Source: Calcarisporiella thermophila CBS 279.70 (Eukaryota; Fungi; Calcarisporiellomycota). From it: 64,000 nt of DNA. Location: the NCBI RefSeq assembly GCF_041956535.1, contig NW_027192192.1, forward strand, positions 1 through 64,000, in the 5' to 3' direction. Below, piece by piece: positions 7,019-61,581 of this stretch. Positions within the stretch are counted from its first letter, which is position 1. Every line of letters begins with the position of its first letter. The position numbers and the translations under genes are program-made. Below the pieces are notes generated by a model. That model made no database searches, had not been told where the DNA came from, and was given only the letters and a program-made list of their open reading frames with translations.

Positions 7019-7224
7019 GCCCTAGTCCTAGTGGAGGCTGCAAAATCGCATCATCAAATGGATTAGATGAGATGGGAAAGCCCCAACTGATATTAAAATT
7101 TGTCATGTCAATTCTAAAGTGTATTATTTTGCGTTCTGCCAAAAGTCGATAGGTGAATAATGGTTGCTGATCCTTCTGCAGCCTTGCAATACATCCAGAC
7201 CTGATATAGGAGGAAAGGCACGAG

Positions 7225-8070
7225 GATATGGTCATCAAATGGACTCAAGATCGGCTGGAAACTCAAAGTGGACACTTCTATTGGACAATTTAGTCGATAG
7301 GATTATCAAGCAGAGATTTCAAAAATTGCCTCGGGAGGATGGGTATACCCTATATCACCCTGACTACTCGTGAGCCGATCTCACTTAGTACGCTACATCG
7401 ATGTGAGAAATGTGAAGAAGGAGGAAGCTCTCAATTACTTTGTCATGATACACATCCAATTGATCGAGAGAAGACAGTTTCGTAACACTTATGAAACGAT
7501 TACGCACATTGAGTTGATGCTGTTTGTAATCAAGCTGGCGTGCTTACGTTGAAAATGCCGCCTCATCTTTCCCCAGTTATTCTGATCAGCTGAAAAAGAA
7601 GAAAGAGATCCCGCTTGCATATAGGTATAAGAAATCAATAGATGATTAAGAGCACATAATAGTAGCGGTTTGGAATATATCTTTCGATCGCGTGCAAGAA
7701 ATTCCACTTTTTTCTACTCGAATAAAACTCCACTTTTTGAGCATCAGTTTTTTGCGCTCGATCTATGCTCAAAGACACGTCCTTAAACAAAGCGCTGGAA
7801 GATATGAAGACGCTCAAGAGGCAATAGCGGTGTTAATTAATTTCTCCATTTTATCAACTACAGTTAACGAAACAGGCATCCACTAAAAGGTATTAAATTT
7901 ATTAAGGATGTATCTTCTCGCGTGTGAAAAAACTTATACTACAATTGAAGGGGAGCAAAAATAAATTGGGCGAGAAAGCTCTCCAAAATTCTCAATCGCG
8001 AGACACGAGGTATTAAGGTATATGATAACTGCGAGAGATTGTTTATGTGGGTACACCTACACATACCCTC
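7225..8070 (+). pseudogene. NB-ARC NLR relic
   Basis: KWTLLLDNLVDRIIKQRFQKLPREDGY matches KCLLLLDNLDDRIAKQMFRMLPREGGY of the 46 kb NLR; EDAQEAIAVLINFS matches the 36 kb NLR; frameshifted. Confidence 0.8.
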
Positions 8071-46014: not shown

Positions 46015-47182
46015 AGTCTCCAGTGGTTTGGCTAATGAAGCTTGTGATTTTGAACAAAGCTCGAGCGCAACGAATTGACGCTCAAAGAGACGCGCTGGAA
46101 TATCGTCCGGGTGAAGAAAAGTGCAAACTTCGAGTATCGGCAATGCTTCCGGAATTTCTCGCACACGATCGAAAGATATATTCCAAACGGTTGCTATTGT
46201 GTGATCATAGTCACCTAGTGATTCCTCACTCCTATACGAAAGCAGTTTCTCTTGATTTCTTTTAGCTGATCAAGATAGTTCTGGAAAGAGGAAGCTGTGT
46301 TTTCGATATACGCGCGCGCAAGCTCTATCGCAAGAGGCATAAACTCGAATTGCGCCACTATCTGGTAAGCGTGATGGAACCGAGCACTCTCTCGATCAAT
46401 TGTATGCATTTCTTGGCCAAGTAGTGCCAAGAGAGCTTCTTCTTCCTTCATAATTCCCACACTAATAACCGTAGCATACCTAAATGGGATCGGTCCGCGA
46501 GTAGTAAGGATGATATACCCACCTTCACGAGGTAACATTCTAAACATCTGTTTGGCAATTCTGTCGTCCAAGTTGTCCAAGAGAAGAAGGCACTTCGAGT
46601 GTGTTTCAAGCCAATCTCGAACCCATTTGATAATTGTATCCTCCGATTTTTCTTCTAATACCATTTCTGGTATACCAAGGTGTATTGCAAGACCGCGGAA
46701 AGAGTCGGCTGCCATGGTCCAACTGTCGACTTTGAGCCAGAATACGAAATCAAACTCTTTACGATGAGCATAGCAAAAATGCAACATAAGTTGGGTCTTT
46801 CCCATCCCACCTAACCCACTGAGCGCTGCGATTTTGCAGCCTCCACTAGAACCTGTGAAAAGGGCATCTTCGATCTTTTTGGAAATATCAGGACGCTCAA
46901 CGAAGGCCTTATTTTCATGTGGAACGCCATAAACGGCGGTTTTGGCTTCTTTGTCCTGGTTCGTCATTTTTGCAAAGTTCCATGCCTCTGATTAATGCAA
47001 AAAAAAAAAAAATTAGTTTATTGACCTCTCCTTTTTAAATTACTATATACCTAAAAAAAGTTATAGTTATTGTTTCCAACGTTAATATATGCTCCGGTTT
47101 CGCCGTGTACATTTCCCCTGATATTGGATGTTTGAGAGGAGATTTGGCCAAGTTTGGTCGGAATAATGGATTATAATAGCAT
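46015..47182 (-). pseudogene. NB-ARC NLR, truncated before the repeats, with a RHIM-like first exon (47182-47051)
   Basis: P-loop GLGGMGKT, LLLLDNLD and MPLAI; frameshift near 46255; intron 47050-46988 with branch site. Confidence 0.85.
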
Positions 47183-54212: not shown

Positions 54213-55148
54213 ATGGCCGATGCAATTCAACTTTCATCGCGGGTGAATCATAGCTGGCCGCGACACAGCGCCAATTTCATCAAGGAACCTACCCATCCGG
54301 GCGGGTATAGTGAGCAATATACAAGTACTCTTTCTTCGGTGGCCAGGGTAAGCGATTGAACATCTATTTGCATGCGGTGTTATATTGGCTCTAAATATGC
54401 TATTTTGAATGGATAGCCTCTACATCGCAGTGAAGATATCCGTCTGGCTCCCTTGAATCCTTTGAATGCATACCAGAGCATTGATTCCTCTAGTCAGACC
54501 CAGTGGGGTTCTGCTCGGCCGCCAACATCCATATCTGAGGTTCAGAGTGGATTGATTGCACCTTCTGGGTTCCAAACCCAAGCTTGTCCACATCCCAATG
54601 CTTCTCTCTCCACACCTCCGCAGCTACAGCAGCCGACTCCTTCCCACCCCAATCCTAAGCACGCGACCTTATTTTACCATCTCTTCCGCTCGAGTCCGAT
54701 TCCCCCGTCGCCAGAACCCAGACAGAACAAAATGTCTATCTTCTCTCTTCTGAACCATCCCCCACGGCCGTCGCGCGACCGTCGTGCTTCCAAAGTCAGT
54801 TCTGCCTCGGCATCCGATTCCAATTCCTCAGCCGCTGCCTCCACTTCCTCCTCTGAACCTGCTCTCACCACCTGTCGCTCTTGTAAACTCTCGCTATTCC
54901 AAGCTCCTGCCAGGCGGAGAGGAGTCAGCGGACTCAAGGATGAGCTTTGTAACCGATGCGGACTAAGGCTCATCAAGTCGCGGCGCTTTTGTCCCGAATT
55001 GGAACGGTGTTACTTTATTCCGAGCAAGAGCGAGTACATTGAATTGATGAGGATTGCGGCATCCAAGGGGGTCGACGGCGTGATGTGCCCGGCTTGCAAT
55101 GCAAAAGAGCTGGCAGTGTATTATCCTTCCGTGCACTTGGCACTGTGA
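54213..55148 (+). CDS. Ash1-like GATA-type zinc-finger transcription factor (intron ~54348-54416)
   Basis: CRSC-x21-CNRCGLR followed by C..C.FIPSKSE..M..G.MCPAC, the Ash1-type second Cys cluster; MSIFSLLN motif. Confidence 0.75.
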
Positions 55149-55657: not shown

Positions 55658-56418
55658 CTAAATTACCTTAATAGCATACTTGCGAAGTGGGAAGTGCTGT
55701 TCCCGCTTCTGCTGGCGCACGGTCTTGAGCGATGACTCGTGCTTTGTGAGGCGGCGGCGGATAGCGCGGGTCTTCTTGGGGCGGAGATCGAGAGGAAGAT
55801 ACTTCTTGCCCTTGTAGAAGAGACGGGTCTGTTCGCGCTGAGTCTGGCTGATGACGGTAAGCACACGAGCAATTGACTTGCGGACAGTGTTACTAGCGAG
55901 GAAAAACAGACCCATGCAAAAGGAAAATGAGCCACTCTATTGCATAGAAACCCAACGATGGAGCGGCGAATGCATTACTTACATCCGGGTGAGCTTGCTA
56001 GCAGCACCGCCAGCCACCTTCTGAACACGCAGGTTCAAGAGCTCCTGCTTCAGCTCCTCGAGTTGCTTCTCGAGCTCAGCCTTATTCTTGGTGCGAAGTT
56101 CGTAGGCCTTAACGGGTGCCTAATGTAATAGGGGAAGGTTAGCGATCAGACAGATCTAATCCATTTGTAGTAGGACAAATTGAATGGAATTGAAAAGAAT
56201 GGGTGATGCGTTCAGAAAGAGAGAAAAAGAGGAGGTCGTGTTGATAAAATGTCACCATTTACAATTCAACGAGGATTGCGATTTGGAATCGACTTCAAAT
56301 TGCAATCTTCATTGTCACGTATATATGATAACTTCTCTCTCGCTAAATCACTTCAAGTAATGCTATGGACTGCATCCTTAGAAAGGCTGCATATGGATGG
56401 AGTTTGGATACATACCAT
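55658..56418 (-). CDS. RPL35: 60S ribosomal protein L35 (uL29); first exon is the ATG only
   Basis: [28 protein letters not shown] and [19 protein letters not shown]. Confidence 0.97.
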
Positions 56419-57005: not shown

Positions 57006-60000
57006 ATGCAGTCTTCTAGTATCAATACGATTCGTGCCGATAAACAAGGGGTAGTTCTCGCGGGAATTACAAACGGAAACGTTAGTGTTACTGTTAATGG
57101 CAAGTAAAAATTAAAATCGTCAGGAACAAATGGCAACATTACTGCAGTTGAATAATTTTTGGATTCTTGGAATATTTAGCAAATAGCTCAAGTAACCCTA
57201 CTCTTAGCTCTAGAGTCTTCAAAGTGCCTCCACGAAATACGCGATATGTTAACCGGTTTCAACTAATGAAGCATTTGGAAGATGTAATTGAGATGATGAA
57301 AAAGAATCAAAACTATGAACCTATTGCGTTATGTGGACTTGGAGGAGTAGGAAAATCGCAAGTAGTGCTGGAGTATTGTTACCGTAAAAAAAGTGAGTTT
57401 CGGTATATCTTTTGGTTGGAAGCCGACAAAGAATCGACCTTGCAGAGTGCATTTGTTGACGCTGCGCGGAGGCTCAATTTAGTACCTATTGGTTCGCATA
57501 TCGTTAATCCTGGGGACGTTTTGTCTTATGTGATCGAATGGCTGCAAAATAATGACGGATGGTTAATTGTTTATGATAATGCGGATGATTTTTCTCTTGG
57601 AAACACTTCGAATCCTTACTTTTTGCAGACAAACTATTTCCCACAAAATGGGAATGGAGTCATTTTGATGACGACTCGCCTCCGTAACATCGTGCACCGA
57701 GCAGTGCCCATTGATATGGAAGATTATCCAATGGAGGACGAAGCTGCATTGAAACTGCTTGGAAAAGATGCAAGTGTACCATACGCTCTGGAGCTTATTA
57801 ATGAGCTTGAATATCTGCCTCTCGCTATCGATTTAGCTGGTGCTTCTATGAAAATTGATAACCATCTGTCGCCTGAAAAATATCTCATTAGCTATAGGAG
57901 TTCTGCAGTCAGATGTCTCAGACATTTGGATCTTCAGGAGATAGCAGAGCTAACCGGTTCCGCCTACGGAAAAACTGTACTGACTGTGTGGGTGGACACA
58001 TTTCGCCGGATAAAACAAAGGAGTGCTTTAGCGGCGAGTCTCCTCCGGACAATTGCTTTGCTTTATCCTGACAATATCCCAGAAGATTTATTATATAAAC
58101 TCTCTCTGCTGGATCTTGGCTCCACTATTGAAGATGCTCGTAGAGATATTAACAAGGCCTTAAAACTATTAAAATCATTCGCGCTGTTACGGGAGACTCT
58201 AAGCGAAACTAACAATACGATGTTACATTCCAATCGATTTATGTCTATCCATCGGGTAGTTCAGAAGGTTACAATTTTGAAAATAGGAGAGGGGGAAAAA
58301 AGAGAACGGTACAAATGGGTTATTTTAGCACTGCGTCAAGTCATACCTGAGAGCTATGATGACTCTGACGAGCATTCGAGAAAAGCGTTGGAGATATATG
58401 CATCCCAGATCCGATATATTTGCCAGCAGTATGCACTATGTAAAGAGGAGCAGGAGAAACTCGAGGATTGCTCGAGCATACAGGAGGCGTTCGTATCTAT
58501 ACTCATTCCCACTGTTATATTCTTCGTAGGCAGGACTCTGTTTGAAGATGCCGAGTATCTTGCAAGGTTAGCAACCTCTGCCTCAGGAACATTAAAGGAT
58601 TCAAATTATCTTGCTAGAGCCGAGAGCAGTCTATGCTACCTTTATTGGATGAAAGGAGATTTTGTGTTAGCGGAAAAACATTGCGAAAATTCGTTTGAAA
58701 TTCGAGAAAAATTGTTAGGAATTGGTCATGAGCTTACAAGATCATCTCTGCACTACATGGGTTTCGTTAAGAGAAAACTGAATAAATATGGGACTGGGTT
58801 AAATAAATTATACCTAGCTGCCAGTGCACATTCGAATTTTCAAAAAGTGAAGTACGAATTTGGAAGAATCGATTTTACCCCTCTTCATCGCGCTGTCCGG
58901 TATTATGATACCGAAAATATACGAAATATTGCCAATAAATATAGACATTATGTAGATACAAGCGATGCACAAGGAGCCACTCCTCTACATCAGGCTACAA
59001 AACGGGGTAAAGAAGAAGTTGTGAGGATGTTGATTTCAGAGTTTGGAGCAGATGCAAATACTATAGACAGCAGTGGAAGAAGTCTATTGCATTGGGCTGC
59101 AAAAGGAGGAAACGTTGAAGTTGTTAGGATGTTAGTGAAAGAGTTTGGTGCTGATCCGAAGAGAAGAGACGATCGGGAGTCAACTCCCCTGCACTTGGCT
59201 GCAGAACGAGGAAGAATAGCGGTCGTAAGGGAGCTAGTGGTTGAGTTTGGGGCAGATGTGAATAGTAAAGATATCCATGGTTATACCCCATTGCACAAGG
59301 CTGTTGAAAGAGGAAATGTAGAAGTTGTGACGGCGCTGGTTACCGAATTCGGGGCAAATGTGAATAGTAGAGCGAGTGAGGGAGAAACTCCGTTGCATCG
59401 GGCCGTACAAAGTGAAAAAAACGAAATTGTGATGATGTTGGTGTCCGAGTTCAGAGCAGATATAAGAATTAAAGACAACGAGGGATGGACCCCATTGCAT
59501 TGGGCCGCATTTCGATGCAACAGCAAAGCAGTGAAAGTGTTGGTAGCTGAGTTTGGGGCAGATGTGAATACAATAAATAGTAAGGGGAAAACTCCATTGC
59601 ACTTGGCGGCAGGGTCCGGCAGTAATGAATTAGTTTTGATGCTGCTTACTGAACTTAAAGCGAGTGTGAATATTAAAGATAATGATGGAAATACTTCATT
59701 ACACTTGGCTATAGAGAATGATGCTAAAGATGCTAACAACATAGTGAAGATATTGGTGACTGTGGGTAGAGCTGATTTGAATATTAAAAACAAGGCGGGA
59801 ACAACTCCATTTCATTTGATAGTATCTAGTTGTTATGAAGACTTGAAAGTGTTAGTTACAGAGTTCGGAGCAGATGTGAATGTTATAGACTGCAATGGTA
59901 GAACTCTTTTGCATTGGGCTGCAATGCAGTTTTATAGTGGAGCTGTAGAAATGTTAGTTAAGGAGTTTGGTGCAGATGTGAATATTAGAGATAATAATGG

Positions 60001-61270
60001 AATCACTCCATTGCATTGGGCTGCACGCTACTCAAATATGGAAGTTGTGAGAATGTTGGTGGATAAGCATGGGGCAGATGTGAATATTATAGATAACAAT
60101 GGGAGCATTCCGCTATATTATGCTGCAGATAGTGGTAGAAATGAAGTTGTGAAAATGTTGGTGACTGAATTTGGGGCAAATGTAAAAATCAAGGACAATA
60201 ACGGGTGGACCCCGTTGCATAGGGCTGCAATTCGATGTAGCGGAGAAGTAGTGGGTATGTTGATAGCAGAGTCCGAGACAGGTGTGAATATAATTGATAG
60301 CAAGGGATATTCACCATTGCATTGGGCTACAGTTTACGGAAATGATGAGGTTGTGAGGAGATTGGTGATAGAGTTCAAAGCAGACGTAAATATTCAAGAC
60401 AACAATGGAGCAACCCCATTGCATTGGGCAGCACTTAGGTGTAGTGGCGAAGTCGTGAGGATATTAGTGACTAAGGGCAAAGGAGATGTAAATTGTAAAG
60501 ATATGAAAGGACGAACTCCATTGCATTGGGCTGCAACTTGTGATAAGACTGAGACTATGAGGGTATTAATTAAGGAGTTTGATGTAGACGAGAATAGTGA
60601 GGATAAGAAGGGAAAAACTCCATTGCACTGGGCCGCAAAATATGATAGAATTGAAGCTGTGAGAGTTTTGGTCAAGGAATTTGGTGCAAAAGTGAATATT
60701 AAAGATAAGATTGGGAGAAATCCATTTTATCTGGCTACAAGATGGGGGAAAGAAGATGTTGCGGGGGTGTTGGTGACAGAGTTCGGAGCAGAAGTAAATA
60801 TTAAAGATATCAAAGGCAGGACCCCATTGCATTGGGCAGCGTTGAAATGTGGTGACGATTTCTTAAAAATGTTGGTGATTGAGGGAAGGGTAGATGTTAA
60901 TAGTAAAGACGATGAAGGAGCAACTCCGTTTTTGTGGGCAGTTTTTGGAAATAGAAGCGATGTTATAAGGATGCTTGTGAGAGAGTTTGGAGTAGATGTG
61001 GATAGTAGAGATAGGATGAGAAGAACTCCATTGCACTGGGCTGCAGCATGGGACAAGGCTGAAATTGCGAGGGTGTTGGTAAAGGAGTTTGGCGCAGGCG
61101 TGAATATTGAAGACAATGAAGGGAGAACTCCATTGTTCATTGCCGTAGAGAGGGGAAATAAAAAAGTAGTGGAGGTGTTCGTGACAGAGTTCGGGACAAA
61201 TGTGAATGTGATAACCAACCATGGAGAAATATCGCTTTACGGAGTGCGGAATGAGGATGAAGCTAATTAA
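57006..61270 (+). CDS. NLR: short N-terminal amyloid-like motif, NB-ARC, TPR-like helices, ~23 ankyrin repeats (exon 1 57006-57099; GC-AG intron)
   Basis: GLGGVGKS, WLIVYDNAD, LMTTR, LPLAI and IHRVVQ motifs; TPLHWAA repeats; exon 1 is conserved in the paralog. Confidence 0.92.
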
Positions 61271-61581
61271 ACTTTGGAAGAAAGCACATAGTGATATTGA
61301 GGGCATACTTTATCCTTATTCTAATTAATATCAGAGATTATATTTTGCTTTGAACAAGTTTATAAAAGTTTCAGTGCGACATCAAAAGATTGTAAACATT
61401 TTAATATATTTAATATCTTGGTCTCATTTTTATCAAAGGATGAACAAAGGATTATGATAATGGATTAATATAACCCTAAAATAAAGTTTGTAAGCCATCT
61501 ACTCACCAAAAGGCGAGAGAATTTCTATTTAACTGGCTTTGTTATTCCATGAGATACGTGAAGCGTAAAATTACCACTATA

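Follow-up and report, generated by a model that had tools for sequence, protein, structure and literature searches.

The window analysed here, 64,000 nucleotides at the start of contig NW_027192192.1 (contig 2) of Calcarisporiella thermophila CBS 279.70, carries part of an array of genes for nucleotide-binding oligomerisation domain-like receptors (NLRs), and our subject is the short first exon of one of them, copy 1. C. thermophila, with one of whose named proteins the caspase-like protein described below is 100% identical, belongs to Calcarisporiellomycota, a phylum that diverged early among the fungi. Exon 1 of copy 1 lies on the forward strand at 57006–57099 and comprises 94 nt, that is 31 codons plus one base, with G-V-V-L-A-G at the core of the encoded peptide; its start codon (57006–57008) is the earliest in-frame ATG. 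A phase-1 intron of 80 nt (57100–57179, +; donor GCAAGT, acceptor TTTAG with the AG at 57178–57179) separates it from exon 2 (57180–61270, +), and the copy 1 open reading frame (ORF) runs to 1367 codons without interruption. Exon 2 encodes, in order and all on the forward strand, an NB-ARC domain (~57269–57850; Pfam 25.8 bits against a cut-off of 23.5), DUF7779 (~58016–58291; Pfam), a TPR region (~58610–58789; Pfam) and about 21 ankyrin repeats (~58845–61250; Pfam Ank 562 bits). The Walker A motif is intact (GLGGVGKS), and an NB-ARC domain with its P-loop, followed by repeat domains, places copy 1 among the NB-ARC nucleoside triphosphatases of the STAND (signal transduction ATPases with numerous domains) class, i.e. 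NLRs. It is the sole intact copy of the ankyrin NLR.

The initial annotation had proposed that the ATG at 57006 opens a 31-codon exon joined in phase 1 to the NB-ARC exon. Exon 1 is real, and the frame holds across the predicted junction from 57099 to 57180; the donor is GCAAGT rather than GT. Exons were searched separately, and the reading frame across introns was checked by script. The NB-ARC frame of copy 1 is open only from 57152, being preceded by a TGA at 57149–57151, and its first internal ATG lies 33 codons in, directly ahead of the P-loop.

Two further copies follow downstream. Copy 2 has, as the initial annotation had noted, a 94-nt exon starting at 61582 (61582–61675, +), with the same phase and a motif of 71% residue identity. 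A further in-frame ATG at 61549, 11 codons upstream, is a possible earlier start and is the one used by the public model P0001, whose exon and splice are identical to those proposed here; the public gene models cited throughout are predictions of another annotation pipeline, not RNA proof. The phase-1 intron of copy 2 (61676–61752, +) runs from GTAAGA to TTTAG, and exon 2 (61753–64000, +) encodes NB-ARC, DUF7779, TPR and the initial ankyrin repeats before its frame stops at 63680, the gene extending past the window. Copy 3 lies beyond the window, with the same structure; its exon 1 occupies contig positions 65506–65614 and has a methionine five codons further upstream. A stop codon falls within the NB-ARC region of copy 3, and its public model, P0136, follows a different splice that truncates the motif. 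Copies 2 and 3 are both decaying, and both have public models. Further ankyrin-repeat fragments of the array lie on contig 2 beside stretches of N (~71.4–75.1 kb and from 79.9 kb).

Across the three copies, 17 of the 31 motif positions are invariant. Pairwise nucleotide identities in exon 1 (74, 67 and 73%) compare with 76, 71 and 70% in the NB-ARC exon. The initial annotation had described a conserved motif in diverging flanking DNA; identity is 50–58% in the 200 nt upstream of exon 1, but in the intron, at 57–70%, it falls just moderately below that of the exon. Synonymous and non-synonymous codon differences among the exon 1 copies stand at about 1:1; with roughly half of the differences synonymous, the pattern fits purifying selection, or coding constraint, on the peptide.

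The exon is not confined to this array. A search with the NB-ARC region returned about 22 NLR loci in the 28-Mb genome, and translation of the upstream regions, combined with a listing of possible splices, revealed a common layout in at least 13 NB-ARC loci: a first exon of 76–103 nt that starts with ATG, a G|GT phase-1 donor, an intron of 55–80 nt and then the NB-ARC ORF. The intron of copy 1 agrees in position and phase with those of copies 2 and 3 and of 10 further NLR loci. NB-ARC identity among the 13 loci is only 30–65%, and the motif peptides align collinearly, with M-S-x-Q-[ST]-S followed by G-N-[VI]-H-A-[ED]-x-G and then [IV]-x-x-G-N. Public models P0126, P0130, P0133, P0135 and P0147 use the same splices as those proposed for the family. 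The motif begins at residue 1 (residue 12 in the copy 2 model), with NB-ARC directly after it. A further upstream exon supplying a folded domain, which the initial annotation had named among the findings that would tell against its reading, is absent from every public model of the family; these models begin at the motif or at most 11 residues from it. The family is rich in asparagine (14%), serine (12%), glycine (11.5%) and valine plus isoleucine (17%), with 0.4% proline and 8% charged residues. Several of its members are decaying.

A profile hidden Markov model (HMM) was built from the 13 NLR-side exons only, and the whole genome was searched with it in six frames. This NLR-only profile matched 19 sites: 15 immediately precede an NB-ARC ORF, two are the C-termini of Peptidase_C14 proteins, one is a patatin gene's first exon and one is an orphan, so that 18 of the 19 lie at one end of an NLR, a caspase or a patatin gene. 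Extending the profile with the effector sequences yielded no additional member in the genome, and receptor-side copies outnumber effector-side copies by about 15 to 3. Two kinds of weaker match were set aside. A degenerate DNA pattern for G-V-[VI]-L-[AT]-G-x-T also hit two chance sites outside the family, one antisense to coding sequence in a housekeeping-like gene (contig 14, judged by eye) and one in a signal-peptide-like start (contig 9); a reversed-pattern control gave equally many hits. A weak match of an early profile on contig 4 lies antisense to a long ORF and was treated as noise.

Proteins that end in the motif, the partners that the initial annotation envisaged, do exist: two Peptidase_C14 proteins carry it at their C-termini, where the NLR-only profile found it, and a patatin gene carries it in its N-terminal exon. 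The HeLo-type effector that had been suggested did not emerge, the motif carriers being caspase-like and patatin proteins. On contig 38, an open frame of 428 codons does match the HeLo domain strongly and over its full length (7175–7831, −; 180 bits), and neither the NLR-only nor the effector-inclusive profile has a match on that contig.

The two caspase-like proteins, C14a (P0102) and C14b (P0103), are encoded on contig 1 by ORFs of about 360 residues. Both public models end in the motif, which each tail holds as a single copy at the extreme C-terminus. Pfam Peptidase_C14 matches C14a with 46 bits and C14b with 60 bits, and when either is aligned to Arabidopsis metacaspase-4, its F-S-G-H-G and N-C-C fall on the catalytic His/Cys pair. 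In the AlphaFold model of P0102, confidence is high over residues 25–290, and the best structural matches are MALT1 paracaspase and metacaspases. Domain match, intact His/Cys dyad and fold together identify these proteins as caspase-fold members of Peptidase_C14. Residues 314–365 of P0102, comprising an acidic linker and the motif, have a predicted local distance difference test (pLDDT) score near 30 and no secondary structure, and are predicted to be disordered.

The NLR-only HMM gives the two caspase tails 16.0 and 15.2 bits, which in a proteome of 10,000 proteins corresponds to E = 0.005 and 0.008; among about 120 unrelated control proteins the highest score is 2.7 bits. The receptor–effector alignment is collinear over some 25 positions, with conserved columns at Q, G, H-A, G-G and G-N.

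The third carrier, the patatin-like phospholipase P0125 (contig 16, ~694.9–696.4 kb; Pfam patatin 102 bits), bears the motif N-terminally, and the first exon that encodes it ends in phase 1 and is organised as in the NLR genes. A Ser/Lys-rich linker follows, and then G-G-G-x-R-G and G-x-S-x-G. The phase-1 exon in this gene suggests that the motif exon was moved by exon shuffling.

When the profile was run against 1.84 billion representative proteins, the matches comprised C. thermophila members, a single metagenome protein of 51 residues and prokaryotic false positives; in this collection no named species besides C. thermophila has a clear member. The false positives (P0123, P0124, P0127, P0131 and P0132) are repetitive proteins with many D-G-G-Y-[IV]-L-A-G units that the profile catches through the motif core. 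The metagenome protein derives from a 655-bp contig in ENA, on which positions 329–655 hold a motif exon, a phase-1 intron of about 70 nt opening with G|GTATGT and the start of the conserved NB-ARC module. Its 51 residues, as delivered by the gene caller, run into the intron. The same anatomy on this contig means that the architecture is present in at least one other organism.

Caspase homologues of the Endogonales (Jimgerdemannia and Endogone) likewise combine an acidic linker with a tail rich in G, N and S, which is too diverged for the profile, and the Jimgerdemannia caspase loci, which hold only retroelement ORFs and a TPR relic, are uninformative on linkage. The nearest bacterial caspase homologue is encoded on a JGI metagenome contig (5155–11041) in an operon for a TPR protein, an AAA_16 ATPase, a second TPR protein and Peptidase_C14. 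The ATPase and the caspase of this operon share a terminal motif some 20 residues long, Y-x-[IV]-x-I-x-T-A-x-G-[IL]-A-I-G-x-x-A-Q-V (14 of 42 positions identical, E = 6e-7). This pair indicates that short shared motifs couple the caspase clade to STAND-type ATPases in bacteria too. A large NACHT-HEAT gene lies upstream of the operon.

Signalling through short terminal motifs is an established principle. A motif shared between the N-terminus of an NLR and the terminus of an effector defines amyloid signalling in Ascomycota and bacteria (PMC5485727, PMC9815663). Among fungi, such signalling has been described in Ascomycota and predicted in Agaricomycetes, with pore-forming, lipase or nucleoside-phosphorylase proteins as effectors (PMC9815663, PMC5485727, PMC12258605); these three papers make no mention of a caspase-fold effector or of an early-diverging fungal lineage. 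Pairs of motifs with CHAT caspase-like domains are noted for bacteria only (bioRxiv 10.1101/2020.01.06.895854). The Calcarisporiella proteins display the two general hallmarks, a short motif (about 20–40 residues) with which an NLR otherwise devoid of effector domains begins and a homologous motif at the terminus of separate effector proteins of the same genome. Adjacency of NLR and effector genes, which is usual and not obligatory, is missing.

None of the named motif families accommodates the sequence. HET-s/HRAM would call for a match to the HET-s model, which is lacking, and the effector tails have one motif copy each. For RHIM, PP and BASS3 the resemblance is partial, given that the copy 1 core reads Q-G-V-V-L-A-G and that its relatives have I-N-V-G-N, with N replacing Q. 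The sigma family is likewise unmatched, by NACHT_sigma as by Ses_B. The statement of the initial annotation that the motif could not be matched to a named family agrees with these results. We do not file it under any of these families; by analogy, it would work as they do.

A close parallel is NWD2/HET-S of Podospora anserina, in which an effector-less NLR with an N-terminal HRAM motif is matched by a separate effector whose C-terminal motif follows a folded domain and stays unstructured until templated. The HRAM effector, however, is a HeLo pore-former with two repeats and a gene that is usually adjacent, whereas the Calcarisporiella carriers are caspase or patatin proteins, with a single copy and unlinked genes. 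PNT1/HELLP/SBP (PP) and Het-eN/SesA/SesB (sigma) resemble the present system in that one single-copy motif family of about 20–40 residues serves several kinds of effector, including a lipase; they differ from it in that the Calcarisporiella patatin effector bears its motif N-terminally. The I-N-V-G-N-N-N-Y of some Calcarisporiella members recalls the RHIM/PP core, but the G-x-Q-x-G centred on Q in PP is not conserved, as the copy 1 motif illustrates. PUASM/PNP_UDP (PMC9815663) also has an enzyme as motif-bearing effector, unlinked pairs and an excess on the NLR side, and differs in its signature (F-x-G-x-G-x-Q-x-x-G-x-G-x-F), its enzyme and its restriction to Pezizomycotina. Bacterial BASS motifs with CHAT effectors likewise couple a STAND protein to a protease of the caspase superfamily through a short terminal motif; those systems are prokaryotic, operon-encoded and use CHAT rather than Peptidase_C14, whereas here the genes are eukaryotic, intron-bearing and dispersed over contigs.

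We consider it probable that the motif is a lineage-specific, prion-like signalling element that connects receptor to effector among the NLRs, caspase-fold proteases and patatin lipase of C. thermophila. The initial annotation had read exon 1 as a signalling motif of the amyloid type that takes the place of an effector domain at the N-terminus, and the effector termini that share the motif lend support to that reading, in which the amyloid state is putative. The 31-codon exon would give the NB-ARC-TPR-ankyrin NLR a short, unstructured N-terminal motif instead of an effector domain. Oligomerisation of the NLR upon ligand binding would then gather several of these motifs, which may take up a cross-beta (amyloid-like) fold and template the same motif on the effectors. 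This would raise the local concentration of the effectors and activate them by proximity, through induced oligomerisation in the case of the caspase-like proteases and on membranes in that of the lipase, with a cell-death or defence response as the likely outcome. Induced proximity is a known mode of activation for caspase-family proteases. Motif–motif contact, the amyloid state and effector activation are thus all proposed by analogy with the systems described above.

Several observations weigh against this scheme. The caspase-tail matches are modest when the NLR-only profile is judged genome-wide over six frames (E = 0.04 and 0.08). Among 15 members compared with the Pfam motif models (HET-s, RHIM, sigma including NACHT_sigma, and Ses_B), none gave a match at E values up to 10. 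The genes of receptors and effectors are not adjacent, with the caspases on contig 1, the patatin on contig 16 and the copy 1 NLR on contig 2. Moreover, no motif of the family has diverged further than that of copy 1, which has 8 identities in 30 with either caspase tail as against 11–12 for other NLRs. Finally, two points concern copy 1 as a gene: its donor is GC where 12 of 12 other family members have G|GT, and the matches in the protein collection searched include no public model of copy 1 of comparable length.

On linkage, no motif-bearing NLR is found within 10 kb of either caspase gene. In P0152, an NLR 10 kb from C14b (contig 1, ~911.6 kb), the first exon agrees in size and phase with those of the family, but the motif is not recognisable in it. 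Unlinked NLR–effector pairs, and an excess of motifs on the NLR side, have been reported before (PMC9815663, PMC5485727). As for the divergence of copy 1, the core G-V-V-[LI]-x-G-N of copies 1–3 matches G-G-V-V-I-S-G-N of P0102, with 8–9 of 30 residues shared overall, and the other NLRs share 11–12 residues with a caspase tail or the patatin motif. Given the low identity of the copy 1 motif to the caspase tails, its cognate effector is uncertain, and so is any pairing of a particular effector with the copy 1 NLR. Complex prediction with the NLR motif and the caspase tail, two copies of each, returned a score of 0.02, which bears on binding in neither direction.

An alternative that draws on the same sequence evidence is that the motif is a receptor–effector coupling peptide but not an amyloid; it would recruit the caspase and patatin proteins through homotypic contacts of finite extent, for instance paired beta-strands within an NLR oligomer, with no self-propagating templating. 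The missing Pfam matches to RHIM, HET-s and sigma speak for it, and bacterial NLR and caspase relatives often use folded effector-associated adaptor domains (PF19955, PF19960, PF19964). The peptide itself argues for the amyloid alternative, however, in that it is about 30 residues long, N/G/S-rich and almost devoid of proline, has alternating beta-branched residues and is disordered in the monomer model. In addition, every NLR motif of this terminal architecture that has been tested experimentally formed amyloids or prions (PMC5485727, PMC9815663). We therefore regard finite, non-amyloid coupling as unlikely, though it is the strongest competitor of prion-like signalling.

A second alternative concerns copy 1 alone. 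Its exon 1 could be a relic, a T-to-C change in the donor having stopped splicing, so that the protein starts without the motif at the ATG in exon 2 (ORF codon 34) while the family stays functional elsewhere. The deviant GCAAGT donor and the missing public model speak for this, as does the decay of copies 2 and 3 and of several other members. Functional GC-AG introns, however, usually have GCAAGT as their strong donor context. When all in-frame combinations of ATG, donor and acceptor were listed by script, there was also a GT-AG choice 4 nt downstream (intron 57104–57186, donor GTAAAA at 57104, AG at 57185–57186), which alters junction residues only. Furthermore, the exon is intact, starts with ATG, is conserved like the NB-ARC exon and shows an excess of synonymous differences, and the frame stays open over the 33 codons from the acceptor to the internal ATG, a stretch that the copies conserve. 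A relic exon is on these grounds improbable. It is a remote prospect that the shared peptide serves localisation, turnover or regulation and was spread by exon shuffling, or that the tail similarity is a compositional coincidence: phase-1 first exons in NLR and patatin genes would ease shuffling, effector-side scores are modest and the global profile also catches unrelated repetitive proteins through G-G-[YV]-[IV]-L-A-G, but nearly all genome matches sit at termini of classic immune or cell-death modules, the alignment keeps its conserved columns in collinear order, the controls stay far below the caspase tails, and the bacterial homologue has an analogous ATPase–caspase motif pair.

A wider scheme can be put forward more tentatively, and we rate it as somewhat less than an even prospect. 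In this scheme, C. thermophila would have a pathway akin to the inflammasome, its NLRs switching on caspase-fold proteases, and a patatin lipase, by way of a prion-like motif of 30 residues with no death-fold adaptor, and the association of caspase, motif and STAND ATPase would have been inherited from bacteria. The animal inflammasome and apoptosome and the BCL10–MALT1 filament offer a parallel, as polymerisation there recruits a caspase-fold protease that is activated by proximity, and the Calcarisporiella effector is structurally closest to MALT1 paracaspase and metacaspases. The animal systems nonetheless use folded death-fold domains (CARD, PYD) where the fungus has a disordered motif of 30 residues, and homology of the coupling elements is not claimed. 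Were the scheme true, amyloid templating would be an ancient and general switch for caspase-family proteases in immunity.

These observations extend the principle of terminal-motif signalling by NLRs to Calcarisporiellomycota, add a motif family unmatched by any Pfam model and link an NLR-associated motif to Peptidase_C14 proteases. They also yield a simple testable model, caspase activation by templated aggregation, and bear on the evolution of NLR–caspase signalling between bacteria, fungi and animals. Short first exons of this kind are easily missed by gene annotation. The copy 1 gene may be unannotated, perhaps owing to its GC donor, and since a search of the protein collection returned no model even for this intact copy, such motifs may be undercounted.

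The window contains a second, reverse-strand NLR of another NB-ARC subfamily, at 46104–47140. Its motif exon (47048–47140, −; profile E = 2e-9) encodes the RHIM-like variant I-N-V-G-N-N-N-Y and is decayed, the ATG being lost and the frame no longer joining that of the NB-ARC region (46104–46943, −), which contains two in-frame TAG codons. This gene is likely a pseudogene. Upstream of copy 1, the intergenic DNA of about 1 kb before exon 1 is without a domain-sized ORF. Two neighbouring ORFs were assigned by eye: the end segment of the one at 54453–55148 (+) is GATA-type zinc-finger-like, and the one at 55658–55935 (−) resembles ribosomal protein L35.

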